Below are positions 29,567-64,000 of a DNA stretch of 64,000 nt, piece after piece. The notes beneath the pieces were generated by a model. It worked only from the letters and a program-made list of their open reading frames with translations, ran no database searches and was not told the DNA's origin. The DNA is from Macrostomum lignano (lineage: Eukaryota): assembly GCA_002269645.1 (NCBI GenBank), contig NIVC01001853.1, positions 124,001 to 188,000 of the forward strand, written 5' to 3'. Numbering within the stretch: position 1 is the stretch's first letter; every line of letters starts with the position of its first letter. Made by a program: the position numbers and the translations under genes.

Positions 29567-32500
29567 AAAACTTATTTATGAAAGTTACGAGACTCTCGTA
29601 ACAACGTAATATTATATCCATTTGCACCCATTACTACAGTTATCTGTTTGATTGGGCCATATGAGTGAAAAGGAGAGGAATAGAAGATGAGGGATGAAAA
29701 AAGAGAGGAGAGGGAATAGAAGAGGCCGGAGATAATGAAGAAAGGAGTTGGAAGGGGGATGGAGGAGAGAAAGGAGGGGAGAGTCAGAGAGGAGAGGGTA
29801 GAGGTGGTAGAGAATAGGGAAAGGAGAGAAAGGAGAGAGAGATAAGAGTAAAGAAGAGAGAATGATGGAGGAAAGGGAAGAAGTAGAGAGAGAGACGAGA
29901 GAGAGGAGAGGTCACGGCTTGTTGAGTTAAAAATTGAGTATATAAGAAGATACCGGCTTCAAGCCTCTGGGCAGAATCTACTGGCAGTCTGCAGAGCTTC
30001 GGATAAAAAGAATGACGTCCGATCACGAGCTCGTTTTAGGTTTGGGGATCTTACAGGTGATCAGGGGATCTCTTTTCGTATTCAAGAATTTCATGAAGGC
30101 CAGAATAATGAAATGTTGCTTTTTAATAAAGCAACTTGAAACATTAGAAAAGTAGGCATTCCGAAGGCAGCATTGAAAGCAAAAATAGTGAGTTAAAACT
30201 TTTTTGCAAATCGTCACAAGCAAGCAAACACGCTAAAAACGCAAAAAAATTTAATGAAGCAAACGAGTAATACTACCGACGGTAGGGACTAACGCGTTTT
30301 ATCATTTGAGATTGTTCTTGTAAATATGATTACTGGGACATGACAGCAATGGATCAAATAACGGAGACTGAAGAGTAGAGTACACGATGAAAGTACATGT
30401 TGAAAGTACATGTTGAAAGTACATGATGAATGTACATGATGAATGTACATGGTGAATGTACATGATATAAGTACATGATGAAAGTACATTATAAAAACAA
30501 ATAGCAGACTGATTGTATTGAAATTAGCAGGAGAATGTGCACGTATTATTTTGGATATAAAAAAGTTAAATATTTAAGAAACGGTTTTTTTTAAAACTAA
30601 ATTTCTTAAAAATGCCAGAGAAGCTTACAAAATTTCGTGTTCAACTCAAGCTGCGGCATCAAATCTCTCCAGCTTCTCCCTGACCCAGGCGACGACCTTC
30701 GAATTTTCCAGGTTCATGCAGATCACTGCTACAAGTTTGGCTTGAATATTTCAGTAAACAGCATGGGCAATTGGGTATTGAAATCCGCAGAACAAAATTG
30801 CAGAGAAAAGTCCACGTCAAGCAGTCAAAGCAGACACGCAGTTTGAAGGGAAAAAGCAATTCAGCATGCAGTGTGGATTGAATTGCAGCACAAATGTACA
30901 AAACTGCAGTTCATAGCACAAGGGCTGCTCGCACTCGATGGCTCTCGATGTGCTCATTTTCTTAAAAAGCAACTAAATTACTTAACTGAGTCAGCAACAA
31001 AGTATGGTCTATGCACAATAACCCAAGAGCATGTACAAAAACTTATGAATCAAATGATAAAAAGGTAAGGAAAACAGGAAAGCAAAACGGTAAAAGTATT
31101 CAGTAATTGGGTTTGAAAATTACAGTCCTGCAAAACTTGAAAATCTGAGCAACGAAGTCCTCAGGTTACTCAGGTCAGGTCTCATCCGACTGAGCTTGGC
31201 GTGAGTCCAGCTGTCTCTCTGCTCCGCTGCAGTTTCCATGGCAACCAGGCGACCCAAGTCGGCCCCGTCTCGCCGCAGCCTCGCCCTCGCCCACAGCCTC
31301 CGCTCCTCATCTTCCCTGCTGCGGTGAGCGCCGCTGTCGCTCCCGCTGCGGTTCGAAACTCGCCACCGCTTCTGCCTGACCCAGCCGATCTTCTCCTCGT
31401 CCTGCGTCTCCATGGCGACGCGTCTCTCTTTCTCGATCATCTCCATCTGCTGCAGGCTGAGCTCCACGTGCTGGCGGCAGTCGCTGTAGTGAGCCAGAGT
31501 GAGCAGCTCCTCAAAGTCCGGGTCTCCAAGCAGCTGTTCAATCCAATGATCGAATGCGATTGCAGGTGCGCGATTGCGGAGCAGCTCAGCTTGGAGACTC
31601 CAGCTCAGGCAGCGGAAGTTCACGTACAGGTGGGAGGAGAGGGGCTGCGACAGTCTGGCTGTGAACAGAGTCTGCGTGAACTCGGGAAGGAATGGGATGC
31701 GAGGCGGAGAGTCGCAGGGGAGGCAGAACCTCCACGCCCAGTCTGAGTCTTCTGGCAAATTAGTTTGGTAATAGCATTCATCTGTTTGAATATCCTGAGC
31801 CTTCAACCCCGACTGAACCTGATGTCTCTGCAGCTCCATCGCGAGTCTCTCAGCCTCCTGAGATTCTCCGAACTTCAAATGCGCCATGGCGGTCATGCAC
31901 AGGGCGGCGCACTTGCACCACTGCAGCTCATGCAGGAGACTGAGCTGCCTCATCAGAGTGTCTCTGTCGCTCGATTCCGACTGCAGCTCACTCACACACT
32001 GGTGCACCACACTGTACACGTTTGCGAACTTGTAGTAAAACTCATTGCTAAAAATTCCTTCCCTGATCTCTGTGACAGCAGGAGGTGCTGTCAGAGGAAA
32101 CAGAGTGAACGGGTGCAGCTCTCTAACACACTGATGAACCATACTGTACCCTTCTGAGAACTTGTGGTACATTTCTGGATATTCACTTTCTTCCCTGATC
32201 TCCCTGACAGCAGGCGGCGCTATCAGAGGCAACAGAGTGAACGGGTGAAAGTAGAACTTCTCTGACTGAAGAGGTCTCACGAGTCTCCTCAGCTGCTCGA
32301 CCACTCCGCCGATGTCGCTTCTCAGCTCACAAAGTCGGTCTCGAACCCTCGCCTTCGTGTTGTCGAAGTCGCCGCCGATTCCAGCGTTCTTGAAGTAGAG
32401 CGGAGCGTCGGGCATGAAGAAGTGCGGCATGCACTCATCGGGGGAGCTTCTCGAGTCGATGAAGCTCAGCATCATGTCGAGAGATTCCTTGAGCAGAGCG

Positions 32501-33470
32501 ATCAGATTGTGGGGCTGCCAAGCACCAGTACGCCAATTATATCTACGATGCTTCTCCAGCAGCATGAAGAAGAGCAGAGTCTTTGCATGGTAGGTCTTGA
32601 GTCCAGGTGTGTCCAGAGTGAGCGGCAAGTGTCTCTTGAAGATGAACTTGATGAGTGTGAACAGCTGGCCCTGGACTGAGCTCAGCCGTCTCATGATGTC
32701 TTTCTCTTGGAAGCTGAAGCTCACTCTGAGCTCGTTGGTCGAGCTCGGTCTGGTCGCTTGAACGAGGTGAACTTTCTTAGGACTGTCTCTAAGCAGTTTT
32801 CTAATTCTGTCTTCACAGAATCTGCTGCAGCACAGGATCGCATGGCACGTGTCCTGTGCAGGCCGCACACCGCACGCCGTGGCTGTCAGTGCAGGTTGGC
32901 TGCCTGCAGAGCGCAGTGAGCGAATAGTCGCTTTGAGGCTGCGGGCCACTCGGTTGCGAATTTAAAATTGAGCAATGTTAATGGGATTCCAGTTGCATGC
33001 GGATCTCAGCATTCTGATGATGAAACCAGCCTCACTCACCTGCTCCCACTGCCACTTGTGCGTGGCCCTCCGTGACCTGCAGCCGAGTGGCGTCTCTGCA
33101 GGAATCCCGTAAACTTTCTTGTCCATCGCAGCCGCCTTCCAGATGAAACTGCTGCCCAGCAACCAGCACAGTCCAGTCAATGTCCGAGTCTGCAGCTGTC
33201 CTGCCGTTCACTTGCACCAGACTGTTGGCCCAGCCCTCTGCGTAGCTGCCCGTCATCTGCCTGCCATCCTGTGTGAGGACTCGAGCGACTTCTTCCAGCC
33301 AGTCAGCCAGTCTCTGCTGACACTTTGCTCTCTGCTCGGTGAATCCCGCATTGCTGAGCAGTCGATGCAGCTCCTCGTTCAGGCGCCTGTCTTGCTGGGA
33401 GTCGTCTGGGAGCCTGGAATGATCCGAGATACGTGTGGGTGATTCTCTCAAAATTTGATGGACAGAACAA

Positions 33471-34806
33471 GCAGGAGAGCTGAGAGTGCAGCTGCTGCAG
33501 CACTCAGACTGGCATCTCAAGCAGGAGAGCTGAGAGTGCAGCTGCTGCAGCACTCAGACTGGCATCTCAAGCAGGAGAGCTGAGAGTGCAGCTGCTGCAG
33601 CACTCAGACTGGCATCTCAAGCAGGAGAGCTGAGAGTGCAGCTGCTGCAGCACTCAGACTGGCATCTCAAGCAGGAGAGCTGAGAGTGCAGCTGCTGAAG
33701 CACTAAGACTGGCATCTCAAGCAGGAGAGCTGAGAGTGCAGCTGCTGCAGCACTCAGACTGGCATCTCAAGCAGGAGAGCTGAGAGTGCAGCTGCTGCAG
33801 CACTCAGACTGGCATCTCAAGCAGGAGAGCTGAGAGTGCAGCTGCTGCAGCACTCAGACTGGCATCTCAAGCAGGAGAGCTGAGAGTGCAGCTGCTGCAG
33901 CACTCAGACTGGCATCTCAAGCAGGAGAGCTGAGAGTGCAGCTGCTGCAGCACTCAGACTGGCATCTCAAGCAGGAGAGCTGAGAGTGCAGCTGCTGAAG
34001 CACTCAGACTGGCATCTCAAGCAGGAGAGCTGAGAGTGCAGCTGCTGCAGCACTCAGACTGGCATCTCAAGCAGGAGAGCTGAGAGTGCAGCTGCTGCAG
34101 CACTCAGACTGGCATCTCAAGCAGGAGAGCTGAGAGTGCAGCTGCTGCAGCACTCAGACTGGCATCTCAAGCATGAGAGCTGAGAGTGCAGCTGCTGCAG
34201 CACTCAGACTGGCATCTCAAGCAGGAGAGCTGAGAGTGCAGCTGCTGCAGCACTCAGACTGGCATCTCAAGCAGGAGAGCTGAGAGTGCAGCTGCTGCAG
34301 CACTCAGACTGGCATCTCAAGCAGGAGAGCTGAGAGTGCAGCTGCTGCAGCACTCAGACTGGCATCTCAAGCAGGAGAGCTGAGAGTGCAGCTGCTGCAG
34401 CACTCAGACTGGCATCTCAAGCAGGAGAGCTGAGAGTGCAGCTGCTGCAGCACTCAGACTGGCATCTCAAGCAGGAGAGCTGAGAGTGCAGCTGCTGCAG
34501 CACTCAGACTGGCATCTCAAGCAGGAGAACTGAGAGTGCAGCTGCTGCAGCACTCAGACTGGCATCTCAAGCAGGAGAGCTGAGAGTGCAGCTGCTGCAG
34601 CACTCAGACTGGCATCTCAAGCAGGAGAGCTGAGAGTGCAGCTGCTGCAGCACTCAGACTGGCATCTCAAGCAGGAGAGCTGAGAGTGCAGCTGCTGCAG
34701 CACTCAGACTGGCATCTCAAGCAGGAGAGCTGAGAGTGCAGCTGCTGCAGCACTCAGACTGGCATCTCAAGCAGGAGAGCTGAGAGTGCAGCTGCTGCAG
34801 CACTCA
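33471..34806. repeat. 50-bp intronic VNTR, ~27 units (5 units in copy 2 at 49698-49946, 1 unit in copy 3 at 61662-61713)
   Basis: GCAGGAGAGCTGAGAGTGCAGCTGCTGCAGCACTCAGACTGGCATCTCAA in exact 50-bp register. Confidence 0.95.
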
Positions 34807-35839
34807 GTCCAGCCCAATCTCAACCCTCCTGAGTTTCGCTGAAATTTCTGCCCCAAGCTGCCAGTCTGTTGGAAGGCGCAGTGCTGCAGTGAAAGCTGAA
34901 CTCACCGATGGAGGCCCGAATCCAAGCTTGGAGCGGCTAGCTTCCGGGCTTCTGGACTTCTGCAATGTGGGAAGGGAGGAAGGGAGGGCTCTCACAGCAG
35001 TTGAGTCTGAGATTCTCAGGCGGCACAAATCATGGAGTTGTACGAGCTCCTATTTCCAGACGAAGCCCTCCGTCAGTGTAACTTCTTGTTTGTAGCTACA
35101 GTAGCTAACCGTAATCAGATGTTTGTTTGTTTTTTCACTCCTTGTTTTTGTTTATATAGTTAAGTATTACACCACTATAATTATTGGCATTATGAGACCG
35201 CCTTGCTCGTTTATCTTTCGTCGTGCCATGGGGTCACTAAAATTATACCAATACTGTTGTGCAATCGTGCCCTTTCGCGCCCTCCTGCCCCGCCCCAACC
35301 CTTTCAGTCTGCCCACCCCTCCAATCGATAATCAATGCGTACGCTGATCACGCCACCCCACCCACCTCCTCTGCTGTACCGTAAATTGGTTCAAAAAGTA
35401 GACATGTACTCGAGGGTCACAAAATAAATACAATGAATTTGCTGTCCAGTGGGCAGCCGCGGCCTTGCGTTCTTTTGGTCCTATCGTTGGCTACGTCAAA
35501 ACAAACTAATTACTTGTGCGAACTGCATCGGTTTTGCGCGGAAGCTCGTGAGTTCTGCTCTGTCCTTTTCCTGCTTCTCCCTGGGGCGCGGGACGGGAGC
35601 CCTAACGGGGGACCTGGGGGTCGCAGCTTCCCAACAGGGTTCAGCTGTAGGCGTTGCTCTGGAGGACGAGGCTCACAACAATACCATTGACGTTCTGAGG
35701 GCTGCGAAGCCTAATTTTCACCTGCGAGCAGACACGCCATATATTTCAATTTGCATATACTTTCTGTGTTCACCTTTTCTCCCTCTATTTCTTATTCACT
35801 TCTACTCTCGTTCCCGCGTTCGCACTTCGCTTAGCCTAA

Positions 35840-36029
35840 TATACTCAGCAACATTAAAAAGTCGCCATCACAGAAGATTCCGTCTGTGGTCGCCACTTTT
35901 GAGAGTGCAGGTAAAGTCTCTCAATCTTGCGGGTGACGCACCTCAGCTACCTCACCTCACCTCAGAACAGTCCAAGAGAAATTGCTCAGTAGCGAATAGA
36001 GTGGCGACTTTTTAATGTTGCTGAGTATA
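35840..36029. mobile_element. MITE with perfect terminal inverted repeats and TA flanks (Tc1/mariner-like)
   Basis: TATACTCAGCAACATTAAAAAGTCGCCA (35840-35867) is the exact reverse complement of 36002-36029. It is absent from the equivalent introns of copies 2 and 3. Confidence 0.8.
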
Positions 36030-37814
36030 CTTGCGTAAAAAGTATATCCTTAGCAATTTTTACCAACCGCTTCCGAACTGCACCAAAGAAATACTTTACC
36101 CAAGCAGAATACTACGCTGAAAACAGTCACAAAATTCTGGTCTCATGGTCTTACTCACCCCGCTTCTCTGGCATCCAGCAGCCGCAGCACCTGCCGCTGC
36201 TCAAATCGCTGTGCCACCTGCGCACACGTCAGACCCCGACCCTCTCGATGACTCGCATCCGCTCCTCTGTCCATCAGAGCCTTGGCTGCTCGCGCGTGAC
36301 CGGCTTCGCACGCTCGTGACAGAGCAGTCCGACCCTGACTGTCTTCAGCACGCACTGACGCACCGAGATCGATGAGTTTCTCAATGAGCTCGTGATGACC
36401 TGCATCAGCTGCCAGCATGAGAGCAGTGGCTCCAGTGCTGTCTGGCAGATCGACATGCTCTTTGCTGACTCGCTCATCATTGATCAGTGTGACAGCAAGA
36501 GCGACGTGTCTTTGAGAGATGGAGAGACGGAGCAGCTGTGTGATGTGAGCTGGCTGCATTCGAGAGAGGGTGTCGTTGAGAACAGAGTTTCTGCCTTCGA
36601 TGGCCATTGCTGCAGTGAAGGTGAGGATGGTGCTGGATTGGAAGAGCCAGTCAGGCTCGAGACCGAGGGAGGCATCAACATCTTTATGAAGACGAGAGCA
36701 AGCCGCGACCGCCCATTGCAAACCGAGATCCAGGGTTGAAAAACACGAAAGAAGGCACTTCATCACTTCTCGTTGATTCAATTCTGTAGCATACTTGGCA
36801 GCCTCGATGCAGCACTGATCTCTTTGTGTTTTGTGAGAGACTGTCGCCACGAGATATTTGATGGCTTCTAAGTGACCATTAGTTGCAGCATACTTGGCAG
36901 CCTCGATGCAGCACTGATCTCTTTGTGTTTTGCCAGCTAGTGTAGGCACGAGAAACTTGACAACTTCTAAGTGACCATTGCTTGCAGCAGATTTCGCAGC
37001 CTCGATACAGCACTTATCTATTTTTGTTTTGTCAGCGATTGTCAACACGAAAAACTTGACGACTTTTAAGTGACCACTGCTTGCAGCATATTTCGCAGCC
37101 TCGATGCGGAGGTGATCTCTTTTTTTTGGTCATCTAACATAGGCACGAGATACTTTACGACTTCTAAGTGACCCTTGCTTGCGGCATATTTCGCAGCCTC
37201 GATGCAGAACTGATCTCTTTTTGTTTGGTCAGCGACTGTCGGCACAAGAAACTTAACGACGTCCCAAAGACGATTGAGTGCTGCAAATTCGGCATCCTCG
37301 ATGCAGCAGTGATCTCTGTTTGCATATGTATGGTCAGCAATTCTCTGCACGAGAAACTGGAAGACTTCCCACTGTCCTTTGAATGCAGCAATTTTTGAAC
37401 AGCCTTTGCAGAAGTTATATATGTCTTTTTCTGTTTGTTGAAAATCCAGATAGTGGCTGAGCGCCTGAATGTTTCCTGTTTTGGCTGCCTCGTCAGCACT
37501 GATTTGTTGGCTCATTCTGCTTGGTTCGCCGGTGAGTGCTTTTCACTAGAAGAAAAATACTTTCCTGTTGTTGGGTGAAGGAGAGGGAAGGAGAAAACGA
37601 ATATATAAAAAACTGCTGCTTTCAGAGTTGCAGTTTGTTTTGATCTGTTCAAAGCAAAACAACGAATGGCTTGAAATAGCATCAGCTGGGTGAGGCGGCT
37701 CGGGTGCACAGGAAAGTGGCTTGTTAAACCGCCTTGGTGAGTTTTTCTCTCCCATTTTGCCGCTGCACGGCATCTCAACTGCCGCAGCTTCAGCCAGTTG
37801 GTTGGCAAGCAGCT

Positions 37815-38106
37815 CAGAATGACAGATGACAGTGCTCAGGTCCCAGCCCAGAGTGACAGATCACAGTGCTTAGGTCCCAGCCCAGAGTGACAGATCACAG
37901 TGCTCAGGTCCCAGCCCAGAGTGATAGATCACAGTGCTCAGGTCCCAGCCCAGAGTGACAGATCACAGTGCTCAGGTCCCAGCCCAGAGTGACAGATTAC
38001 AGTGCTCAGGTCCCAGCCCAAAGTGACAGATCACAGTGCTCAGGTCCCAGCCCAGAGTGACAGATCACAGTGTTCAGGTCACAGCCCAGAGTGACAGATC
38101 ACAGTG
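37815..38106. repeat. 34-bp VNTR (GTGACAGATCACAGTGCTCAGGTCCCAGCCCAGA) upstream of copy 1
   Basis: A homologous, longer array lies at 52560-53245. Confidence 0.9.
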
Positions 38107-44850: not shown

Positions 44851-44869
44851 GGCTAATTGAAAAACCCAA

Positions 44870-47306: not shown

Positions 47307-50300
47307 TCACTGCAGTCTCATCCGACTGAGCTTGGCGTGAGTCCAGCTGTCTCTCTGCTCCGCTGCAGTTTCCATGGCAACCAGGCGCCCCAAGTCGGCC
47401 CCGTCTCGCCGCAGCCTCGCCCTCGCCCACAGCCTCCGCTCCTCATCTTCCCTGCTGCGTTGAGCGCCGCTGTCGCTGCCGCTGCGGTTCGAAACTCGCC
47501 ACGACTTCTGCCTGACCCAGCCGATCTTCTCCTCGTCCTGCGTCTCCATGGCGACGCGTCTCTCTTTCTCGATCATCTCCATCTGCTGCAGGCTGAGCTC
47601 CACGTGCTCGCGGCAGTCGCTGTAGTGAGCCAGAGTGAGCAGCTCTTCCAAGTCCGGGCCTCCAAGCAGCTCATCCAAGCGCCGGTGCCTCTGCAGCTCC
47701 TCCAAGTCCGGGTCTCCAAGCAGCTCATCCAAGCGCCGGTGCCTCTGCAGCTCCTCCAAGTCCGGGTCTCCAAGCAGCTCCTCCAAGTCCGGGTCTCCAA
47801 GCAGCTCTTCCAAGTCCGGGTCTCCAAGCAGCTCTTCCGAGTCCGAGTCTCCAAGCAGCTCTTCCGAGTCCGAGTCTCCAAGCAGCTCTTCCGAGTCCGG
47901 GTCTCCAAGCAGCTCTTCCGAGTCCGGGTCTCCAAGCAGCTGTTCAATCCAATGATCAAATGCGATTGCAGGTGTGCGATTGCGGAGCAGCTCAGCTTGG
48001 AGACTCCAGCTCAGGCAGCGGAAGTTCACGTACAGGTGGGAGGAGAGAGGCTGCGACAGTCTGGCTGTGAACAGAGTCTGCGTGAACTCGGGAAGGAATG
48101 GGAATCGAGGCGGAGAGTCGCAGGGGAGGCAGAACCTCCACGCCCAGTCTGAGTCTTCTGGCAATTTAGTGGGGCCAAAATCAGTGTCTTTTTGAATATA
48201 ATCTGGCTCCAACCCTGACTCAACCTGATGTCTCTGCAGCTCCATCGCGAGTCTCTCAGCCTCCTCAGATTCTCCGAACTTCAAATGCGCCATGGCGGTC
48301 ATGCACAGGGCGGCGCACTTGCACCACTGCAGCTCATGCAGGAGACTGAGCTGCCTCATCAGGGTGTCTCTGTCGCTCGATTCCGACTGCAGCTCGCTCA
48401 CACACTGGTGCACCACACTGTACACGTCTGCGAACTTGTTAAGCCCATCGCTATCACTTCCTTTCCTGATCTCCGTGACAGCAGGCGGCGCTGTCAGAGA
48501 CAGCAGAGTGAACGGGTGAAAGTAGAACTTCTCTGACTGCAGAGGTCTCAGGAGACTCATCAGCTGCTCGACCACTCCGCCGATGTCGCTTCTCAGCTCA
48601 CAAAGTCGGTCTCGAACCCTCGCCTTCGTGTTGTCGAAGTCACCGCCGATTCCAGCGTTCTTGAAGTAGAGCGGAGCGTCGGGCATGAAGAAGTGCGGCA
48701 TGCACTCATCGGTCGAGCTGCTCGAGTTGATGAAGCTCAGCATCATGTCGAGAGACTCCTTGAGCAGAGCGATCAGATTGTCGGGCTCCCAAGCTGTTGT
48801 TAACCAACGATCTGTGCCATGCTTCTCCAGCATTGTGAAGAGCAGAGTCTTTGCATGGTAGGTCTTGAGTCCCGGTGTGTCCAGAGTAAGCGGCAAATGT
48901 CTCTTGAAGATGAACTTGATGAGTGTGAACAGCTGGCCCTGGACTGTGTCCAGCCGTCTCATGATGTCTTTCTCTTGGAAGCTGAAGCTCACTCTGAGCT
49001 CGTTGGTCGAGCTGGGTCTGGTCGCCCGAACGAGGTGAACTTTTTCATTATTATAAAAAACCTGTTTCCTATTTCCATCCACACAGAAACTGCTGCAGCA
49101 CTCGATCGCATGGCACGTGTCCTGTGCAGGCCGCACACCGCACGCCCTGGCTGTCACTGCAGGTTGGCTGCCTGCAGAGCGCAGTGAGCGGAGAGTCACA
49201 AATTGTGGCGAGTGAAATGCAATCGGAGCCTGTGAATTCATCATCAGCATTCTGATGATGAACCCAGCCTCACTCACCTGCTCCCACTACCACCTGTGCG
49301 TGGCCCTCCGTGACCTGCAGCCGAGTGGCGTCTCTGCATGAACCCTCTCCGTCGCAACCACCTTCCAGATGGAACTCTTGCCCAGCAACCAGCACAGTCC
49401 AGTCAATGTCCGAGTCTGCAGCTGTCCTGCCGTTCACTTGCACCAGACTGTTGGCCCAGCCCTCTGCGTAGCTGCCCGTCATCTGCCTGCCATCCTGTGT
49501 GAGGACTCGAGCGACATGTTGCAGCCAGTCAGCCAGTCTCTGCTGACGCTTTGCTCTCTGCCAGGTGAATCCCGCCTCGATGAGCAGTCGATGCAGCTCC
49601 TCGCTCAGGCGCCTGTCTTCGTGGAAGTTGTCTGAGAGCCTGGAATGAACCGAGATGCGTGTGGGTGATTTGCTCAGAGTTGGATGGACAGAACAAGCAG
49701 GACAGTTGAGAGTGCAGCTGCTGCAGCACTCAGACTGGCACCTCAAGCAGGAGAGCTGAGAGTGCAGCTGCTGCAGCACTCAGACTGGCATCTCAAGCAG
49801 GAGAGCTGAGAGTGCAGCTGTTGCAGCACTCAGACTGGCATCTCAAGCAGGAGAGCTGAGAGTGCAGCTGCTGCAGCACTCAGACTGGCATCTCAAGCAG
49901 GAGAGCTGAGAGTGCAGCTGCTGCAGCACTCAGACTGGCATCTCAAGCTTCGCTGCAATTTCTGCCCCAAGCTGCCAGCCTGTTGGAAGGCGCAATGCGG
50001 CAGTGAAAGCCAAACCGGTCAGACTCACCGATGGAGGCCCGAATCCAAGCGGTGAACAGCTCCCTGCCGGGCCTCTGGGCTTCTGTAACGAGTGAAGGAA
50101 AGCAAGGTTCTTACAACTATGCATGAAGCTGTTCACATGAGTATTCATATATTTTGCCGTTCTGTGGAAAGCAAAATTGTTTATTTTCCTGTGGGAGAGT
50201 ACAAACTGCAAATATATTTTCATTTGCGACTTTTCTTACCTCCTTTTTCCTTTCATTTTTTACAATTAATCGTGTATTTGCATGAAAATACTTTTACGCA

Positions 50301-51499
50301 ATTTTTACCATGAATTTTCTAACAACCTTGCAGAATTCTCGCCTCACTCACCCCGCTGCACTGAGATCCAGCAGCCGCAGCACCTGCCGCTGCTCAAATC
50401 GCTGTGCCACCTGCGCAAACGTCTGACCCCGACCGTCTCGATGACTCGCATCCGCTCCTCTGTCCATCAGAGCCTTGGCTGCTCGCACGTGACCGGCTTC
50501 GCACGCTCGTGACAGAGCAGTCCGACCCTGACTGTCTTCAGCACGCACTGACGCACCGAGATCGATGAGTTTCTCAATGAGCTCGTGATGACCTGCATCA
50601 GCTGCCAGCATGAGAGCAGTGGCTCCAGTGCTGTCTGGCAGATCGACATGCTCTGTGCTGAATCGCTCATCATTGATCAGTGTGACAGCAAGAGCGACGT
50701 GTCTTTGAGAGATGGAGAGACGGAGCAGCTGTGTGATGCGAGCTGGCTGCATTCGAGAGAGGGTGTCGGTGAGAACAGAGTTCCTGCCTTCGATGGCCAT
50801 TGCTGCAGTGAAGCTGAGGATGGAGCTGGATTGGAAGAGCCAGTCGGGCTCGCGGCCGAGGGAGGCAACGACATCTTCGTGAAGACGAGAGCAAGCCGCG
50901 TCTGCCCATTGAAAACTGAGATCCGGGTTTGAAAGACACGAAAGAAGGAACTTCACCACTTCTCGCTGATTCGAATCTGCGGCATATTCGGCAGCCTCGA
51001 TGCAGCACTGATCTCTTTTCGTTTGCTCAGCGATGATCGGCACGAGAAACTTGACGACTTCAAGGTAACCATTTGTTGCAGCATATTTGGCAGCCTCGAT
51101 GCAGCACTGATCTCTTTTTAATTGATCAGCGACTGTCGGCACGAGAAACCTCACGACATCCCAAACACGAGTGAATGCAGCAGATTCGGCATCGTCATTA
51201 CAGAAGTGATCTGTTTGTGTTTGCTCAGCGACTGTATGGACGAGAAACTCGATGATTTCCCAGTGACCCTTTAATGCAGCATATTTAGCGGCCTCGATGC
51301 AGCAGAGCTCTCTGTTTGTTTTGTCGGCGACGGCGTGCACGAGAATCTTGACGAGTTCCAAGCGACCTTTGGATGCAGCATCAGGTAAATATCTTTTGCA
51401 AAAATAAATTCGATTTTCTTCTATCTGATGGTTGAGATGATGCCTGAGTGCGTGGATATTTCCTGTGCTGGCAGCCTCATCAGCACTGATTACCGGCAT
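47307..51499 (-). CDS. Ankyrin-repeat + cGAS-like (Mab-21/cGLR) nucleotidyltransferase fusion gene, copy 2, intact, 1142 aa
   Basis: Exons 51499-50352, 50082-50029, 49639-49278 and 49171-47307 total 3429 nt in one open frame. An in-frame TAA lies 12 nt upstream of the ATG. Canonical ANK repeats (GATALMLAADAGH, GRTALSRACEAGH) and NTase motifs (GSYAEG, DSDID, QDTCH, LRVSFS, KTYHAKTLLF) are present. Confidence 0.88.
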
Positions 51500-51617
51500 T
51501 TGCCTTGGTTAGGCGGTGAGTGCTTGATCTAGAAAGAATATTTTTGCTTGTCACGAACGATTTATTGTTTTTTGTCGCTGTACTTCTTTAATCAACTTTA
51601 ACTGTCTGTGATTCTTG

Positions 51618-51850
51618 TCTGCTGTCAGAGTGGCAGATGTCAGTCACGGCTGCTGTCAGAGTGGCAGATGTCAGTCACGGCTGCTGTCAGAGTGGCAGAT
51701 GTCAGTCACGGCTGCTGTCAGAGTGGCAGATGTCAGTCACGGCTGCTGTCAGAGTGGCAGATGTCAGTCACGGCTGCTGTCAGAGTGGCAGATGTCAGTC
51801 ACGGCTGCTGTCAGAGTGGCAGATGTCAGTCACGGCTGCTGTCAGAGTAG
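51618..51850. repeat. 31-bp VNTR (CTGCTGTCAGAGTGGCAGATGTCAGTCACGG)
   Basis: About 7-8 units; ~3-4 units at the homologous site 63510-63620. Confidence 0.9.
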
Positions 51851-52559
51851 CAGGTGTTTCAAAGGTTTGTGCAGCCGGTTGCCAGAAAGTTTTTACCACC
51901 TCATCTCTCAGCTTCCCACCTTTTGAGTCTCTGGTGAGGCCGACCACCCCCTTTCACCGTAGAAACCGAAACTTCTCTCCTGAGAATGAGCGCTAGCCCG
52001 CCCCTCCCCCAAGCACTTACTTCAGGGGTCCCAGGATGGCCACGGAGAAGCTGTGGCTGCAGCGGCCATCCCAAGCTGTACTTGATGAAGCTGAGCTGAC
52101 CCACCCATTGTGCCTCAGTGCTGTCTGAGATCTTTTGAAGCATTCAATGGCCTACTGAGAGGTGCACAATGCTGCTCAATCCCTCAGTGCATCGGTTTCA
52201 GTGGGCGTTTAAATGTACGGGGTATTTGTGCGAGTGAGAAGGAAGAGAGGGAGAAGCAGGGGAGGAGAGAAAGAGGGAAGTTAACCAGCCTTTGTGAGTT
52301 TTTCTCTCCCACTCTGCCGCTGCACGGCATCTCAACTGCCGCAGCTTCAGCCAGTTGGTTGGCAAGCAGCTCGGCTCTCTGCCCCCCTCTCTCTGTCTCA
52401 CCTTCACTGCCGACCCGCCACTCCTTCCAGTGCGAATTGAGACAAAGGGCTCAGGTGCGCTGCTGGCGCCTCCGCGTTGATGCAATCAAGACGGCACCCG
52501 ACAGCAGAATGGCGTCCGGTTGCGTCCGGGACCGGCGCCTCTATTTATCGCCCAACGCC

Positions 52560-53245
52560 CAAGTGCTCAGGACCCCGCCCAAAGTGACAGATCACAGTGC
52601 TCAGATCCCAGCACACAGTGACAGATCACAGTGCTCAGGTCCCAGCACACCGTGACAGATCACAGTGCTCAGGTCCCAGCCAAAAGTGACAGATCACAGT
52701 GCTCAGGCCCCAGCCCAGAGTGACAGATCACAGTGCTTAGGTCCCAGCCCAGAGTGACAGATCACAGTGCTCAGGTCCCAGCCCAGAGTGACAGATCACA
52801 GTGCTCAGGTCCCAGCACACCGTGACAGATCACAGTGCTCAGGTCCCAGCCAAAAGTGACAGATCACAGTGCTCAGGCCCCAGCCCAGAGTGACAGATCA
52901 CAGTGCTTAGGTCCCAGCCCAGAGTGACAGATCACAGTGCTCAGGTCCCAGCCCAGAGTGACAGATCACAGTGCTCAGGTCCCAGCCCAGAGTGACAGAT
53001 CACAGTGCTCAGGTCCCAGCCCAGAGTGACAGATCTCAGTGCTCAGGTCCCAGCCCAGAGTCACAGATCACAGTGCTCAGGTCCCAGCCCAGAGTGACAG
53101 ATCACAGTGCTCAGGTCCCAGCCCAGAGTGACAGATCACAGTGCTCAGGTCCCAGCCCAGAGTGACAGATCACAGTGCTCAGGTCCCAGTCCAGAGTGAC
53201 AGATCACAGTGCTCAGGTCCCAGCCCAGAGTGACAGATCACAGTT
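52560..53245. repeat. 34-bp VNTR upstream of copy 2
   Basis: AGAGTGACAG recurs at 52921 and 52955; ~20 units. Confidence 0.95.
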
Positions 53246-56184: not shown

Positions 56185-56520
56185 AGGGAAAGGAGAGCGA
56201 GAGGGGAGAGAGGGAGGGGCGGGAGAGGGAAAGACGGGAGAGGAAGAGGCGGGAAAGGGAGAGAGGCGGGAAAGGGAGAGGCGGGAAAAGGAGAGGCGGG
56301 AAAAGGAGAGGCGGGAAAGGGAGAGGCGGGAAAGGGAGAGAGGCGGGAAAAGGAGAGGCGGGAAAAGGAGAGGCGGGAAAAGGAGAGGCGGGAGAGGGAG
56401 AGGCGGGAAAGGGAGAGAGGCGGGAAAAGGAGAGGCGGGAAAAGGAGAGGCGGGAGAGGAGAGGCGGGAGGAGAGGCGGGAAAAGGAGAGGCGGGAGAGG
56501 GATACAAGAGAGAGGGAGAG
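56185..56520. repeat. 15-bp purine minisatellite (GAGGCGGGAAAAGGA)
   Basis: Direct tandem units. Confidence 0.9.
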
Positions 56521-56759
56521 GCGAAATACAAATATAAGGCTGAATTTGGGGGTTCTCAAATGAAGCTGAGTTGTTGAGGCTCTCAATAAAAATGGGATCA
56601 AATATTTTTCTGAGAATGCACTTTTGCACTGCCACTTAGGACCCGCCATGCTGTTCGCTCAAGTGGCTGAGACCTTACTGGAGATTGCCTGCCATCTGGG
56701 GTCTGAATGTTCGGGATGAACTTGGCCTGCATTGGTGAGCTGACTGCTGATCTGTATGA

Positions 56760-57530
56760 GCCAATACAGATGAGTCAGTGGCGCCAATACAGATGAATCT
56801 GTGGCGCCAATACAGATGAGTCAGTGGCGCCAATACAGATGAGTCAGTGGCGCCAATACAGATGAGTCAGTGGCGCCAATACAGATGAGTCAGTGGCGCC
56901 AATACAGATGAGTCAGTGGCGCCAATACAGATGAGTCAGTGGCGCCAATACAGATTAGTCAGGGGCGCCAATACAGATTAGTCAGGGGCGCCAATACAGA
57001 TGAGTCAGGGGCGCCAATACAGATGAGTCAGTGGCGCCAATACAGATTAGTCAGGGGCGCCAATACAGATGAGTCAGTGGCGCCAATACAGATGAGTCAG
57101 TGGCGCCAATACAGATGAGTCAGTGGCGCCAATACAGATGAGTCAGTGGCGCCAATACAGATTAGTCAGGGGCGCCAATACAGATGAGTCAGGGGCGCCA
57201 ATACAGATGAGTCAGTGGCGCCAATACAGATGAGTCAGTGGCGCCAATACAGATGAGTCAGTGGCGCCAATACAGATTAGTCAGGGGCGCCAATACAGAT
57301 GAGTCAGTGGCGCCAATACAGATGAGTCAGTGGCGCCAATACAGATTAGTCAGGGGCGCCAATACAGATGAGTCAGTGGCGCCAATACAGATGAGTCAGT
57401 GGCGCCAATACAGATGAGTCAGTGGCGCCAATACAGATGAGTCAGTGGCGCCAATACAGATTAGTCAGGGGCGTCAATACAGATGAGTCAGTGGCGCCAA
57501 TACAGATGAGTCAGTGGCGCCAATACAGAT
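56760..57530. repeat. 23-bp minisatellite (CCAATACAGATGAGTCAGTGGCG), ~33 units
   Basis: Direct tandem units; most contain TGAGTCA, some TTAGTCA. Confidence 0.95.
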
Positions 57531-58059
57531 CAAAATATTCCGGTAGATGCACAGAAATTAACTGCTATGCTTCTATCCGGGAGATTTTGTAGAATTTTGG
57601 AAAAAACTGCTCTCCCAAAATGGTCCCAGCAATTGAGCTGCAGTCTGCAAAGCTTCGGATAAAAAGGGTGAAGTCCAATCACAAGCTCGTTTTAGGTTTG
57701 CATTTAGGGATCTTGCGGGTGATCAGGGGGTCTCATTTTATATTCAGGAATTTCATTAAGGTAAAAATGAATGAAATGTAGTTTTGTAAAGCAATTTGAA
57801 ACATCAGAAAAGATTTTTGCTTGTGGCTTGTCAAAGTGGGTTGAAATTGTTTGCAAATCGTCACAAGCAGGCAAACATGCTAAATATTTTTAAAGAAGCA
57901 ACCTACGAGTACAACAATTACTGACAGTAGAGATTAACGCATTTTATCCTTTGCGATTGTTTTTTTAAAATGACCACTGGGATATGACGGCAACGGATCA
58001 AATAACGGGGAAGTCACTGAATGTTCATGAGGGAGATGTCAGGCAGGCAGTCGCTGCAG

Positions 58060-58385
58060 AGTACATGATGAAAGTACATGATGAAATTACATGATGAAAG
58101 TATATGACGAAAGTACATGATGAAATTACATGATAAAATTACATGATGAAAGTACATGATGAAAGTACATGATGAAATTACATGATGAAAGTACATGATG
58201 AAAGTACATGATGAAGGTACATGATGAAAGTACATGATGGAAGTACATTATATAAGTACATTGTGAAAGTACATGATGAAAGTACAAGATGGAAGCACAT
58301 TATATAAGTTCATTGTGAAAGTACATGATGAAAGTACAAGATGAAAGTACATGATGAAAGTACAAGATGAAAGTACATTATTAAA
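58060..58385. repeat. 13-bp VNTR (ATGATGAAAGTAC)
   Basis: Shorter homologous arrays lie at ~30385-30490 and ~46555-46615. Confidence 0.9.
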
Positions 58386-58940
58386 ACAGACTGATTGTGC
58401 TGAAATAATCCAGGAGCATGTACACGCAATATTTGTGGACATAAAAATACCTGTAAAATATTAACAGAAACTGTTTTGTTTTAAAAACTAAATTTCTTAA
58501 AAATCCACAGAGGCTTACAAAATTACGAGTTCAACTCAAGCTGCTGCATCAAGTCTCTCCAGCTTCTCCCTGACCCAGCCGACCTTTGAATTTTCCAGGT
58601 TCATGCAGATAACTGCTACCTGTGCATTTGGCTTGAATATTTCATTAAACAGCATTGGCAATTGGGTGTTGAAGTCCGCAGAACAAAATCGCAGAGAAAA
58701 GCCCGCATCAAAGCAGACACGCAGTTTGAACGGAAAAAGCAATTCTGCATGCAGTGTGAATTGAATTGCAGCCCAAATGTGCAAAACTGCAGTTCATAGC
58801 ATGAGGGCTGCTCGAACTAGATAGCTCTTGATGAGCTAGCTTATTTCCTAAAAAAGATAAAAGACAAACTAAACCAAGTCGACAGAAATTCCAGGGGCTT
58901 TCATGCAGATCACGCAGAACCCTCATCAAGTCAGCGTGCA

Positions 58941-61900
58941 TCAGAATAAGCAGTTTGATTCAACAACGAAGTGCATGAAGTTTATAAAGTCTCTCCAGCT
59001 CTCGATGTGCTCGTTTTGTAAAAAAATTACCGACAAACAAAAGCAAAAACACAGCAAAGCAAAACAAAATAAAACAAAAGTCTTCCTTGTCCAACCTTGG
59101 TTTTGCGATTTGACGTTGAGTAGTTCGGATGCTCCATCAGGTCTCTCAAGATTCTCCAGTCTTATCCGTCTGAGCTTGGCGTGAGTCCAGCTGTCTCTCT
59201 GCTCCGCTGCAGTTTCCATGGAAACCAGGCGACCCAAGTCGGCCCCGTCTCGCCGCAGCCTCGCCCTCGCCCACAGCCTCCGCTCCTCATCTTCCCTGCT
59301 GCGGTGAGCGCCGCTGTCGCTGCCGCTGCGGTTCGAAACTCGCCACCGCTTCTGCCTGACCCAGCCGATCTTCTCCTCGTCCTGCGTCTCCATGGCGACG
59401 CGTCTCTCTTTCTCGATCATCTCCATCTGCTGCAAGCTGAGCTCCACGTGCTCGCGGCAGTCGCTGTAGTGAGTCAGAGTGAGCAGCTCCTCCAAGTCCG
59501 GGTCTCCAAGCAGCTCTTTAAAATCCAGGTAACTCTGCAGCACCTCCAAGCGCTGGTATCTCTGCAGTTCATCCAACCGTGGGTATCTCTGCAGCTCATC
59601 CAAGTGCTGATTGCAGAGCAGCTCGGCTTGGAGACTCCAGCTCAGGCAGCGGAAGTTCACGTACAAATGGGAGGAGAGAGGCTGCGACAGTCTGGCTGTG
59701 AACAGAGTCTGCGTGAACTCGGGAAGGAATGGGAAGCGAGGCGGAGAGTCGCAGGGGAGGCAGAACCTCCACGCCCAGTCTGAGTCTTCTGGCAGTTTTA
59801 TCTTAGTACGCCCGTATCTACTCTCGTCTCGAACATCCTGCGGCTTGAACCCTGACTCAACCTGATGTCTCTGAAGCTCCATCAGGAGTCTCTGAGCCTC
59901 CTCATATTCTCCGAACTTCAAATGCGCCATGGCGGTCACGCACAGGGCGGCGCACTTGCACCACTGCAGCTCATGCAGGAGACTGAGCTGCCTCATCAGA
60001 GTGTCTCTGTCGCTCGATTCCGACTGCAGCTCGCTCACACACTGGTGCACCACACTGTACACGTCTGCAAACTTATGGTACATTTCCTCTGAATACGGAT
60101 CACTTCCTTCCCTGATCTCTGTGACAACAGATCGCGCTGTCAGAGGCAGCAGAGTGAACGGGTGAAAGTAGAACTTCTCTGACTGCAGAGGTTTCACGAG
60201 TCTCCTCAGCTGCTTGACCACTCCGCCGATGTCGCTTCTCACCACACAAAGTCGATCTCGAACACTCGTCTTCGTGTTGTCGAAGTCGCCGCCGATTCCA
60301 GCGTTCTTGAAGTAGAGCGGAGCGTCGGGCATGAAGAAGTGCGGCATGCACTCATCGGGCGAGCTGCTCGAGTCGATGAAGCTCAGCATCATGTCGAGAG
60401 ACTCCTTGAGCAGAGCGATCAGATTGTCGGGCTCCCAAGCTGTTAACCAACGATCTGTGCCATGCTTCTCCAGCATTGTGAAGAGCAGAGTCTTTGCATG
60501 GTAGGTCTTGAGTCCAGGTGTGTCCAGAGTGAGCGGCAAATGTCTCTTGAAGATGAACTTGATGAGTGTGAACAGCTGGCCCTGGACTGTGCTCAGCCGT
60601 CTCATGATGTGTTTCTCTTGGAAGCTGAAGCTCACTCTGAGCTCGTTGGTAGAGCTCGGTCTAGTCGCCCGAACGAGGTGAACTGTATAGTCATTGCTAT
60701 CAGTATCGAGCAGGTTTCTAACTTTTTCCTCACAGAAGCTGCTGCAGCACTGGATCGCATGGCACGTGTCCTGTGCAGGCCGCACACCGCACGCCGTGGC
60801 CGTCACTGCAGGTTGGCTGCCTGCAGAGCTCAGTATGCGGAGAGTGGCTTTGTAGCGAGTGATAAAGATAGGTTAATTTGAATCTGTAGATTTTCTCTTA
60901 GCTGGTTGGTAATTTTGAGTGTTTGACTGTGTAATCAACTAAATATACAAAGGTTGTAAGATTAGAAATGTGAGCGCTGTCATTTTTTGTTAATCGACAT
61001 GTTTCTTTTCGCGACAGGCATCGTCAGGCTCTTTAAAATTACCCAAGCACCGCTGCACCCACTCTGCTGCAACCGGAGCCTGTGAGTTCAAAACCCAATG
61101 GCCCGGCTCAGCCAGTTGGCATCAGAGTTTTCTTTTCAATTTCGCCTGCCGCTAGTTTCAGCACCCAAGCCGACATTCGCAGTCACAGAAGCTGCTGGAC
61201 TCTTGTTCGCCACTATGTTGCGAATTTAAAATTGAGCAAAGTTAATGGGCTTCCATTTGCATGCGGATCTCAGCATTCTGATGATGAACCCAGCCTCACT
61301 CACCTGCTCCCACTGCCACCTGTGCGTGGCCCTCCGTGACCTGCAGCCGAGTGGCGTCTCTGCATTGCTGCCGATCTCTGTCGCAGCCACCTTCCAGATG
61401 GAACTCCTGCCCAGCAACTAGCACAGTCCAGTCAATGTCCGAGTCTGCAGCTGTCCTGCCGTTCACTTGCACCAGACTGTTGGCCCAGCCCTCTGCGTAG
61501 CTGCCGGTCATCTGCCTGCTATGGCCATCCTGTGTGAGGACTCGATGCAGCTCCTCGCTCAGACGCCTGTCTTGCTGGGAGTCGCCTAAAACCCTGGAAT
61601 GATCCGAGATGCGTGTGGGTGATTTGCTCCAAATTGACATATGGTTGAAAAGACAGAGCAAGCAGGAGAGCTGAGAGTGCAGCTGCTGCAGCACTCAGAC
61701 TGGCATCTCAAGCAGAATTTCAACCCTCCTGAGTTTCACTGCGATTTCTGCCTCAAGCTGCCAGCCTGTTGGAAGGCGCAATGCGGCAGTGAAAGCTCAA
61801 CCGGTCAGACTCACCGATAGAGGCCCGAATCCAAGCCGTGAGTGGCTGCCTGTCGGGCCTCTGGGCTTCTGCAATGCGGGAATGGAAAGTGCACTTGCTG

Positions 61901-63391
61901 GATAAGTCTTCACTTATTAGGTTTTTAGTATTTTTTAAAATAATTTATTGAAAAAAATTCTAAACCTTTGAATTTCAACAGTCAACCATAAATAGGGGAG
62001 ATAGTAGCTCGTTGTTTTGCAAAATTAAGTTTCCGCCAGAATGCTGAACTTCACTTATTTAATCAAAATTGTCTAAATTGTCTAAATTGTCTAAATGGCC
62101 TTACGATCGCTGGTACTCACTCCGCTCCACTGAGATCCAGCAGCCGCAGCACCTGCCGCTGCCCATATCGCTGTGCCACCTGCGCACATGTCTGACCCCG
62201 ACCGTCTCGATGACTCGCATCCGCTCCTCTGTCCATCAGAGCCTTGGCTGCTCGCACGTGACCGGCTTTGCACGCTCGTGACAGAGCAGTCCGACCCTGA
62301 CTGTCTTCAGCACGCACTGACGCACCGAGATCGATGAGTTTCTCAATGAGCCCGTGATGACCTGCATCAGCTGCCAGCATGAGAGCAGTGGCTCCAGTGC
62401 TGTCTGGCAGATCGACATGCTCTGTGCTGACTCGCTCATCATTGATCAGTGTGACAGCAATTGTGACAGCAATAGCGACGTGTCTTTGAGAGATGGAGAG
62501 ACGGAGCAGCTGTGTGATGTGAGCTGGCTGCATTTGGGAGAGGATGTCGGTGAGAACAGAGTTCCTGCCTTCGATGGCCATTGCTGCAGTGAAGCTGAGG
62601 ATGGTGCTGGATTGGAAAAGCCAGTCGGGCTCGAGGCCGAGGTAGACAACGACATCTTCACAAAGACGAGAGCAAGCCGCGACTGCACATTCGAAATCGA
62701 GATTCGTTGTTTGATTCCGACTTAAGAGACACGAAATAAGGAACTTCACTACTTCTCTCTCATTCTTCTCTGTTGCAGATTTAGTAGCCTTGATGCAGCA
62801 CTGATCTCTTTTTGTTTGATCAGCGACTGTCGGCACGAGAAATTTGACAACTACCCACTCACGATTGCTTGTAGCAGATTTGGCTGCTTCGATGCAGCAC
62901 TGATCTCTTTTTGTTCGGTCAGCGACTGTCGGCACGAGAAATTTGACGGCTTCTAAGTGACCCTTGCTTGCAGCATATTTCGCAGCCTCGATGCAGCATT
63001 GATCTCTTTTTGTTTGGTCAGCGACTGTCGGCACGAGAAACCTCACGACATCCCAAACACGAGTGAATGCAGCAGATTCGGCATCGTCATTACATAAGCG
63101 ATCTGTTTGTGTTTGCTCAGTGACTGTATGGACGAGAAACTTGATGATTTCCCGGTGACCCATGAGTGCAGCATATTTAGCGGTCTCGATGCAGCAGAGC
63201 TCTCTGTTTGTTTTGTCGGCGACGGCGTGCACGAGTAACTTGACGAGTTCCAAGCGACCTTTGGAGGCAGCATCAGGTAAATATCTTCTGCAAAAAAGAT
63301 ATCGGTTTTCTTCTATCTGATGTTCGAGATGATGTCTGAGTGCTTGGATATTTCCTGTGCTGGCAGCCTCATCAGCACTGATTACCGGCAT
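58941..63391 (-). CDS. Ankyrin-repeat + cGAS-like (Mab-21/cGLR) nucleotidyltransferase fusion gene, copy 3, open frame, 1164 aa
   Basis: Exons 63391-62121, 61868-61815, 61593-61304 and 60820-58941 total 3495 nt in one frame, with the same splice sites and phases as copies 1 and 2. It has a 27-aa in-frame deletion upstream of the GS motif and an extended C-terminus. Confidence 0.85.
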
Positions 63392-64000
63392 TTGCCTTGG
63401 TGCGGCAGAGATTGCTTGATCTAGAAAGAATATTTTTGCTTGTCACGAACGATTTATAGTTTTTTATCACTGTACTTTTTTAATCAACTTTTACTGTCTG
63501 TGATTCTTGTCTGCTGTCAGAGTGGCAGATGTCAGTCACGGCTGCTGTCAGAGTGGCAGATGTCAGTCACGGCTGCTGTCAGAGTGGCAGATGTCAGTCA
63601 CGGCTGCTGTCAGAGCGGCAGGTGTTTCAAACGTTTGTGCAGCCGGTTGCCAGAAAGATTCACCGCCTCATCTCTCAGCTGCCCACCTTTTGAGTCTCTA
63701 TGGTGAGGCCGACCACCCCCTTTCACCGTGCAACCGAAACTTCTTTTCCGAGGATGAGCGCTGAGCCCGCCCCTCTCCCAAGCCCTTCAGCTCCCAGGAT
63801 GGCCACGGAGAGGCTGCGGCTGCAGCGGCCACCCCAAGCAGTACTTGATCAGGCTGAGCTGACCCATTGTGCCCAAGTGCAATCTGAGATCTTTGGACGC
63901 ATTTACTGGCCCTCAGTGCAGTTACAGTAGGCGTTTAAGTGTACGAGGCCTTTGTGCCAGTGAGAAGGAAGAGAGGGAGAAGCAGGGGAGGGGAGAAAGA

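Follow-up and report, generated by a model that had tools for sequence, protein, structure and literature searches.

We analysed a 64,000-nt stretch of the genome of the flatworm Macrostomum lignano (assembly GCA_002269645.1, contig NIVC01001853.1, positions 124,001 to 188,000; the whole stretch is called the window, and positions are counted from its first letter). Within 29,970-64,000 it contains three paralogous genes, all on the minus strand and of four exons each when rebuilt from their splice junctions, whose predicted products join ankyrin (ANK) repeats to a nucleotidyltransferase (NTase) of the cGAS-like receptor (cGLR) type. We consider it moderately probable that these are three tandem duplicated ANK-cGLR members encoding a ligand-activated second-messenger enzyme with an ankyrin binding or autoinhibitory module, in an array shaped by crossing-over, duplication and conversion. 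An array of this kind had been proposed by an initial inspection of the letters and open reading frames (ORFs), here called the sequence-only reading. Its three units, coordinates, GTGAGT donors, 54-nt exon, phases 2/2/1 and protein lengths of 1142, 1164 and 1189 aa were all reproduced, and its assignment to ANK-cGLR fusion genes with a Mab-21 fold is supported by a family profile, hhalign, AlphaFold2 and Foldseek, and the Pfam ankyrin models.

Gene models and splicing

The coordinates of the genes and of the other features are collected in Table 1. The spliced frame of copy 2 (3429 nt, 1142 aa) has a single terminal stop, and that of copy 3 is open over 3495 nt (1164 aa). Copy 1 gives 3569 nt when spliced, one base short of frame; with an N placeholder, used for alignment only, it reads through 1189 aa with no further stop. 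In the alignment of the three first exons, the repeat consensus CAAACAAAAAGA appears in copy 1 as CAAAAAAAAGA, which contains a run of eight A (A8), and the resulting frameshift leads to a stop at 37068-37066; the defect is either genuine or an error in the assembly of the homopolymer. Copy 2 is the sole copy in the window without an evident lesion, and looks fully intact.

The donor sequence is GTGAGT throughout, and every exon-1 ORF is closed by the TGA that the G/GTGAGT donor contains (a slash marks the splice site). The 54-nt exon 2 and the acceptor cattccag/G are common to the three copies, as are the phases 2/2/1; exon 3 measures 374 nt in copy 1, 362 nt in copy 2 and 290 nt in copy 3. 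The motifs GSYAEG, DSDID, LRVSFSFQEK and KTYHAKT are found in every copy, and tblastn locates exactly three copies within the window. They lie 12-14 kb apart on the same strand and share 5' and 3' flanks and flanking minisatellites, as a tandem array does. Since only 609 bp of the window remain upstream of the copy 3 ATG, the array may extend past this edge. The sequence-only reading had described the genes as hidden in split ORFs; the ORFs are indeed split, but only by ordinary introns. An origin of the split ORFs as a prokaryotic or pseudogene artefact is ruled out by the canonical introns, the conserved phases and a transcript-derived paralogue model.

The splicing gains independent support from that model. 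A protein search with the region of copy 2 behind the ANK part gave 31 matches, all from M. lignano except one JGI protein, the best at ~85% identity; the best identity for the window proteins in the protein collection is ~85-88%, with none above ~88%. P0001, the best match, is a paralogue encoded on contig NIVC01000085.1 of the same assembly (locus L001). Wherever the two could be aligned, in introns and flanks as well, this locus is 90-95% identical to the window in nucleotides. There P0001 aligns as four blocks whose identity is 100% or nearly so, with junctions homologous to those of the window genes (CGGG/gtgagtgagg; ttgcag/AAGCCCAGAG...CCTCCATCG/gtgagtctga; cattccag/GCTCTCAGAC; ctctgcag/GCAGCCAACC), and the 18-aa exon is matched at 100%. 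The GenBank annotation of GCA_002269645.1 was built from a genome-guided RNA-seq transcriptome (PMC5730564). Because the RNA-seq-derived P0001 model uses homologous junctions, it supports our exon model, the 54-nt exon included, and indicates that the shared gene structure is not due to chance. The junctions put forward by the sequence-only reading are thereby backed by transcripts of a paralogue, not by transcripts of the window loci.

Domain content and active site

Searched as a single sequence, the NTase region retrieved nothing relevant from the PDB sequences. Searched against the PDB sequences, a 12-sequence family profile matched cGAS with an E-value of 4.7e-6 and Sp-cGLR1 with 9e-6, followed by MAB21L1 (0.015) and MB21D2 (0.9). 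Using hhalign, we aligned the family profile to human cGAS alone with a probability of 51%, and to a small cGAS/cGLR alignment (sequences from Table S3 of Li et al., PMC9980059) with a probability of 97.2% and an E-value of 3e-11. The AlphaFold2 model of NTase plus tail has a predicted local distance difference test score (pLDDT) of 76 and a predicted template modelling score (pTM) of 0.81. When this model was compared with the PDB by Foldseek, the top match was cGAS (probability 1.0, E 1e-5, ~350-400 aligned columns), and the matches after it were MAB21L1, MB21D2, Sp-cGLR1, bacterial CdnE and MiD51. By sequence profile, motif and predicted fold, the window proteins are predicted to carry a two-lobed cGAS/Mab-21-type nucleotidyltransferase.

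The published active-site pattern of cGLRs, h[QT]GS-X8-20-[DE]h[DE]h-X50-90-h[DE]h (Li et al. 2023, PMC9980059), could be fitted in all three copies as M-T-G-S, X20, D-I-D-W, X56, Q-D-T, the spacing of 20 between GS and DxD being the upper limit of the pattern. The catalytic GS, DxD and D residues are present in every copy, as had been claimed from the sequence. Among 85 family representatives (50% clustering), G and S are kept in 84 and 85, the two Asp of D-I-D in 84 and 81, and an acidic residue (D or E) stands at the third position in 73; 72 of the 85 keep all of these. The candidate third Asp, D138 of the core, falls within three residues of human cGAS D319 in the hhalign alignment. In the secondary structure of the model, GS sits at the strand-helix turn after strand 50-54, D-I-D opens strand 79-91 and D138 opens strand 139-145, a modelled placement that is the expected topology.

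The calculated isoelectric point (pI) of the NTase core is 8.8 in copy 1, 6.6 in copy 2 and 6.7 in copy 3, and 9.1 and 9.6 in the cGAS and coral controls. According to Li et al. (PMC9980059), nucleic-acid-sensing cGLRs have a pI >8.5, and non-nucleic-acid ligands were suggested for acidic cGLRs. The core pI of copies 2 and 3 is thus a weak hint in favour of a non-nucleic-acid ligand, and the difference between neighbouring paralogues hints that the charge of the ligand-binding surface used by cGLRs may have diverged.

The ankyrin part is recognised directly by Pfam (copy 2: Ank_2 86.3 bits, cut-off 27.3; Ank 66.7 bits), and the N-terminal 33-aa repeat array alone, taken from the N-terminus of copy 3, scores 63.2 bits against Ank_2 and has a period of 99 nt by Tandem Repeats Finder (TRF). 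The part is composed of ~10 repeats, beginning with the 33-aa array of variable repeat number, which is followed by a degenerate middle and by three canonical repeats, these last three being near-identical among the copies (synonymous divergence, dS, 0.03-0.05). We note that P0001 (L001 9860-10455) lacks the entire variable 33-aa array, and the upstream 31-nt satellite runs almost directly into the conserved exon 1 there; the array can therefore be lost as a block.

After the NTase, the order of parts is a family-specific ~190-aa domain, an acidic repeat tract and a charged C-terminus. The ~190-aa domain is strongly conserved across the family; Pfam does not recognise it, and Foldseek finds no significant neighbour in the PDB (best E ~1, with a faint TPR/IFIT resemblance). 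The frame of copy 3 stays open where copies 1 and 2 have their stop, and the T-rich sequence that it enters reads as a 21-aa hydrophobic segment, TFVLFCFALLCFCFCLSVIFL (59019-59081, copy 3 aa 1119-1139), which could be a tail anchor or 3' untranslated region read-through. The more distant paralogues P0014 and P0020 likewise end in hydrophobic tails.

Family, divergence and competing explanations

An exhaustive profile search of 1.84 billion protein representatives retrieved 1122 proteins with E<=1e-3, of which 81 reached E<=1e-30. Ten matches were sampled for their names: six of the seven down to E ~1e-23 are named M. lignano proteins, most of them with several hundred residues ahead of the NTase, and the next tier (E ~1e-12 to 1e-16) consists of two bivalve proteins and one ENA protein. 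Judged from these sequences, the family is a large Macrostomum-specific ANK-cGLR expansion.

The architecture itself is not new, although the sequence-only reading had allowed that it might be. Li et al. 2023 (PMC9980059) list ankyrin- and TPR-fused cGLRs as architecture classes, include M. lignano PAA proteins with Ank_2 among the cGLRs of their Table S2, and took five M. lignano proteins into a biochemical screen of 140 enzymes, from which 15 were selected as active. For two of the five, #92 (PAA93208.1) and #93 (PAA68676.1), the constructs began shortly ahead of the NTase and so lacked the ANK part, and the ligands offered to them were nucleic acids (PMC9980059). Both proteins are closely related paralogues of those in the window and share their architecture and family, and their NTase regions look closely similar (TGSYAEGW, DSDIDW, AQDTC, LRVSFxFQEK, KTYHAKT). 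The ANK-cGLR architecture and this Macrostomum family have thus been catalogued since 2023; what is new here is three separate paralogue loci (best identity ~85-88%), their tandem arrangement, and differences in repeat number and indels that are not in the catalogue. A text search of the literature found no functional study of an ANK-cGLR.

Compared with better-known proteins, the window proteins share with cGAS, Drosophila cGLR1, Sp-cGLR1 and Cv-cGLR1 the two-lobed Mab-21 fold, the GS / [DE]h[DE]h / h[DE]h residues and the WRxSFSxxE and SYHxKT motifs, and differ from them in being only ~14-19% identical, in the GS-DxD spacing of 20, in an N-terminal ankyrin solenoid of ~380-450 aa, in the extra ~190-aa C-terminal domain, and in a core pI of 6.6-8.8 (against >8.5 for the nucleic-acid-sensing cGLRs). 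MAB21L1/2, MB21D2 and MiD49/51 have the same fold (Foldseek probability 1.0), but they have no ankyrin fusion, and the profile matches MAB21L1 and MB21D2 less well (0.015 and 0.9, against 5e-6 for cGAS). MiD49/51 are N-terminally membrane-anchored, non-catalytic adaptors. The variable repeat array on a signalling enzyme or switch, the lineage-specific expansion, the tandem paralogues and the mosaic divergence recall NLR/LRR and ankyrin-NACHT receptors; this is an analogy only, and the substitution rates of the window genes show no demonstrable positive selection.

Variation between the copies consists mainly of changes in repeat number and in-frame indels. In exon 3 of copy 3, an in-frame deletion has taken out a conserved helix segment of 27 residues, RLLIEAGFTWQRAKRQQRLADWLQHVA, which contains the family-invariant G-F-T and lies immediately ahead of the GS strand. 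We estimated the ratio of nonsynonymous to synonymous divergence (dN/dS) by the Nei-Gojobori method, which with three sequences gives pairwise regional values and not site-level ones. In the variable ANK array, the putative recognition module, where diversifying selection would have raised the ratio above 1, it is 0.53-0.65 (dS up to 0.54 against copy 1); in the NTase core it is 0.59-0.71 (dS 0.10-0.14), in the tail ~0.7 (dS 0.11-0.18), and in the C-terminal region 0.5-1.1 (dS 0.03 in two of the three pairs and 0.16 between copies 1 and 3). The values of 1.2-1.6 in the canonical ANK segment carry no meaning, because its dS is only 0.03-0.05 and the changes are too few. These estimates point to weak constraint with no demonstrable positive selection, and the word "diversifying", which the sequence-only reading had attached to the family, finds no support in dN/dS, the ratio being 0.5-0.7 in the ANK array, NTase core and tail alike. 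Gene conversion or unequal exchange between paralogues would be expected to leave a mosaic of dS such as the one seen here (0.03-0.54), which therefore suggests gene conversion.

Under the reading that we prefer, an ANK-cGLR family with ligand-activated members, the product would be a cytosolic protein made up of ankyrin repeats, an 18-aa linker, the NTase, the ~190-aa domain, the acidic repeat tract and the charged C-terminus. By analogy with cGAS and other cGLRs, the enzyme would be inactive until a ligand binds, and the ligand-bound enzyme would make a nucleotide second messenger that acts on a downstream receptor. The ankyrin solenoid would be the likeliest module for binding a ligand or partner, or for autoinhibition, and the array would have evolved through unequal crossing-over, segmental duplication and gene conversion. 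Gating of the enzyme by a fused ankyrin sensor, possibly one for proteins, and a regulatory helical tail, all put forward by the sequence-only reading, would be reasonable hypotheses within this scheme.

Several observations weigh against this reading. HMMER searches with Mab-21 and Ank profiles had been proposed as a check by the sequence-only reading; the ankyrin repeats were recognised, and in copy 2, PF20266 (Mab-21_C) scores 21.9 bits, below the gathering cut-off of 24.1, and PF03281 (Mab-21) has no match at E<=1. A sub-threshold score weakens the claim to Pfam membership, not that to the fold assignment, and several paralogues carry precomputed PF20266 matches. The profile alignments span only core positions 107-289, with the third-Asp strand and the C-lobe, so that the N-lobe is matched via the structure model only (Foldseek TM ~0.45-0.52, target-normalised; pLDDT ~58-74), and the pLDDT of the model drops to <50 just before the third Asp. 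The flanks of this Asp are Q and T in the window copies, not hydrophobic as in the pattern, whereas they are V/M/F/I and L/F/I in many paralogues and hydrophobic in the more divergent members. Weak constraint is also suggested by the dN/dS of 0.5-0.7 together with the copy 1 frameshift and the copy 3 deletion. In the published screen, #92 and #93 carry no 'active' note and are not among the 15 active enzymes (PMC9980059). Finally, 'most platyhelminthes' are described as being without cGLRs (Li et al. 2023, PMC9980059), planarians lack cGAS and STING (PMC13563047), and the parasitic flatworms counted by Li et al. (Table S5, PMC9980059) have zero cGLR and zero STING genes; given these absences, a receptor for the messenger in Macrostomum is not established. 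A search with the human STING ligand-binding domain, for which the query was approximate, yielded 357 candidates from vertebrates and one hemichordate only and is uninformative on Macrostomum, and literature searches for Macrostomum with STING or cGLR found no statement on a Macrostomum STING.

The signs of weak constraint bring up an alternative that we take seriously while thinking it unlikely, namely that these are young decaying duplicates in a minisatellite-rich, recombination-prone region, in which copies 1 and 3 at the least, and perhaps the whole set, would be non-functional leftovers of segmental duplication. The frameshifted copy 1, the loss from copy 3 of 27 residues with the invariant G-F-T, the dN/dS of 0.5-0.7 throughout, the embedding of the locus in tandem repeats and the lack of any match above ~88% identity for the three proteins in the protein collection would all fit. 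Decay is harder to reconcile with ~3.4 kb of open frame per copy, interrupted by a single homopolymer indel that may be an assembly error, with splice sites and catalytic residues intact in all three copies, with an NTase-core dN/dS clearly <1, and with indels that are all in frame.

The conservation of the active site argues most against a second alternative, rather unlikely in our view, in which the Mab-21 fold would serve as a scaffold or adaptor without catalysis (MiD49/51-like or possibly MAB21L1-like), with the ankyrin part and tail binding other proteins and the old active site binding at most a nucleotide cofactor. Few positions of this otherwise weakly constrained family are as well conserved as GS, DxD and the third Asp, all of which are kept in 72 of 85 representatives; moreover, cGAS and Sp-cGLR1 receive far better profile scores than MAB21L1 and MB21D2 do. 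On the other hand, an active-site residue has been lost in 13 of the 85 family members, Foldseek also matches MAB21L1, MB21D2 and MiD51 at probability 1.0, and MAB21L1/2 have complete active sites without a known product (Li et al., PMC9980059). The screening of close paralogues by Li et al. without reported activity is a further point for silence, offset by the constructs having lacked the ANK part and by nucleic acids having been the sole ligands offered.

It also seems improbable that the proteins are active signalling enzymes working outside immunity (in reproduction, development or stress), with an expansion that reflects recent genome duplication and the paralogue richness of M. lignano, and not pathogen pressure. 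In favour of this, the M. lignano genome is highly redundant (PMC5730564). No dN/dS value >1 is meaningful, and no STING is documented in flatworms. Whole-genome duplication, however, yields 2-4 copies, against at least 81 clusters at 50% identity, and a fusion with repeat arrays of variable length is a typical trait of immune receptors. In addition, the lineage-specific cGLR radiations of bivalves and corals have been read as immune (Li et al., PMC9980059). A more specific version of the preferred reading, to which we give little credence, would make the ANK-cGLRs a repertoire for non-nucleic-acid ligands such as proteins, in which variable ankyrin arrays produced by unequal crossing-over would give specificity and binding would free the NTase, its messenger being read by a receptor distinct from canonical STING, in a phylum of which the other members studied have lost cGAS and STING.

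Locus context and significance

Minisatellites form a patchwork over positions 1-29,970 of the window, where at least 15 arrays, unrelated to one another, have unit lengths of 4-53 nt. These first 30 kb have a strong purine/pyrimidine strand skew (GC skew up to 0.73), and their long ORFs (e.g. 1423-2388) are read-throughs of repeats, not genes; no credible Pfam matches were found for the intergenic and upstream ORFs of the window, which are located in tandem repeats. Minisatellites of 31, 34 and 23 nt flank the window copies (as seen in a blastn self-comparison of the window) and also dispersed M. lignano paralogues. Since the same satellites occur in both settings, the duplicated unit comprises gene and satellites, moved together by segmental duplication. 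Among the introns, intron 1 is 1.2 kb in copy 1 and ~0.26 kb in the other copies. The longer intron of copy 1 harbours, at ~35850-36035, an insert that resembles a foldback element, its inverted arms being ~27 nt long (atactcagcaacattaaaaagtcgcca and its complement); it is possibly a small miniature inverted-repeat transposable element.

Table 1. Features of the window and of two dispersed paralogue loci (L001, L002); amino-acid positions are those of copy 2.
Feature	Copy or locus	Positions	Strand	Details
Gene	Copy 1	31120..37515	-	Exons 37515-36159, 34959-34906, 33413-33040, 32903-31120
Gene	Copy 2	47307..51499	-	ATG 51499, stop 47307; exons 51499-50352, 50082-50029, 49639-49278, 49171-47307
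Gene	Copy 3	58941..63391	-	Exons 63391-62121, 61868-61815, 61593-61304, 60820-58941
A8 homopolymer, exon 1	Copy 1	37120..37127	-	Exon-1 nucleotide alignment of three copies; ORF list
Variable 33-aa ankyrin array	Copy 1	36788..37317	-	TRF, 5.4 units; two repeats more than copy 2
Variable 99-nt (33-aa) ankyrin array	Copy 2	50978..51381	-	TRF, 4.1 units
Variable 33-aa ankyrin array	Copy 3	62775..63251	-	TRF, 4.8 units; Ank_2 63 bits
Three canonical ankyrin repeats adjoining exon-1 donor	Copy 2; copy 1; copy 3	50366..50632 (aa 290-378); 36173-36439; 62135-62401	-	Pfam Ank/Ank_2, best stretch aa 283-355
Exon 2, 54 nt (18-aa linker SPEARQ...)	Copy 2; copy 1; copy 3	50029..50082; 34906-34959; 61815-61868	-	Spliced models; same exon in P0001 model
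50-nt minisatellite, intron 2	Copy 1; copy 2; copy 3	33468..34807; 49694-49948; ~61660-61710		TRF; 26.8, 5.1 and ~one units; unit identity 97-99%
In-frame deletion junction, exon 3	Copy 3	61530..61556	-	Removes equivalent of copy 2 aa 418-444 (49590-49510)
TGSYAEGW, h[QT]GS motif	Copy 2; copy 1; copy 3	49456..49479 (aa 455-462); 33230-33253; 61485-61508	-	Invariant G and S in alignment A1
DSDIDW, [DE]h[DE]h, putative metal-binding motif	Copy 2; copy 1; copy 3	49399..49416 (aa 476-481); 33173-33190; 61428-61445	-	
AQDTCHAI, candidate third catalytic Asp (core D138)	Copy 2; copy 1; copy 3	49104..49127 (aa 537-544); 32836-32859; 60753-60776	-	
C-lobe hallmarks LRVSFSFQEK ... KTYHAKT	Copy 2	48846..48998	-	Aligned to cGAS WRLSFSHxEK ... 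SYHVKT
Family-specific ~190-aa domain after NTase (aa ~746-935)	Copy 2	47940..48510	-	Predicted helical hairpins and small sheet; AlphaFold2 pLDDT 84, pTM 0.86
Coding 27-nt minisatellite, LLGDPD[LS]EE	Copy 2	47637..47939	-	~11 units; TRF and alignment; expanded relative to copies 1 and 3
Tandem in-frame duplication, exon 4, just past NTase core	Copy 1	32056..32247	-	Two ~132-nt units; TRF 31982-32247; alignment
Minisatellite examples	Window	4247-6388; 19206-21213; 25851-27328		38 nt x 57; 20 nt x 100; 17 nt x 87
31-/34-/23-nt satellite sites	Window	51619-51857, 63511-63625, 37810-38106, 52562-53244, 56760-57530		
31-/34-/23-nt satellite sites	L001	9123-9492		
31-/34-/23-nt satellite sites	L002	7279-7715, 15768-16872		

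Most studied flatworms (planarians, cestodes and trematodes) are reported to be without cGLRs and STING, and Macrostomum is the exception, with at least ~80 clusters at 50% identity, nearly all of them carrying fused ankyrin arrays. The sole published test of Macrostomum ANK-cGLRs used constructs without the ANK part and nucleic acids only. To the catalogue of this family the window adds a view at the level of a locus, in which tandem paralogues differ mainly by repeat number and in-frame indels and have diverged as mosaics. As M. lignano is amenable to transgenesis and RNA interference, sensing by a cGLR fused to a repeat array would be directly approachable in this animal.

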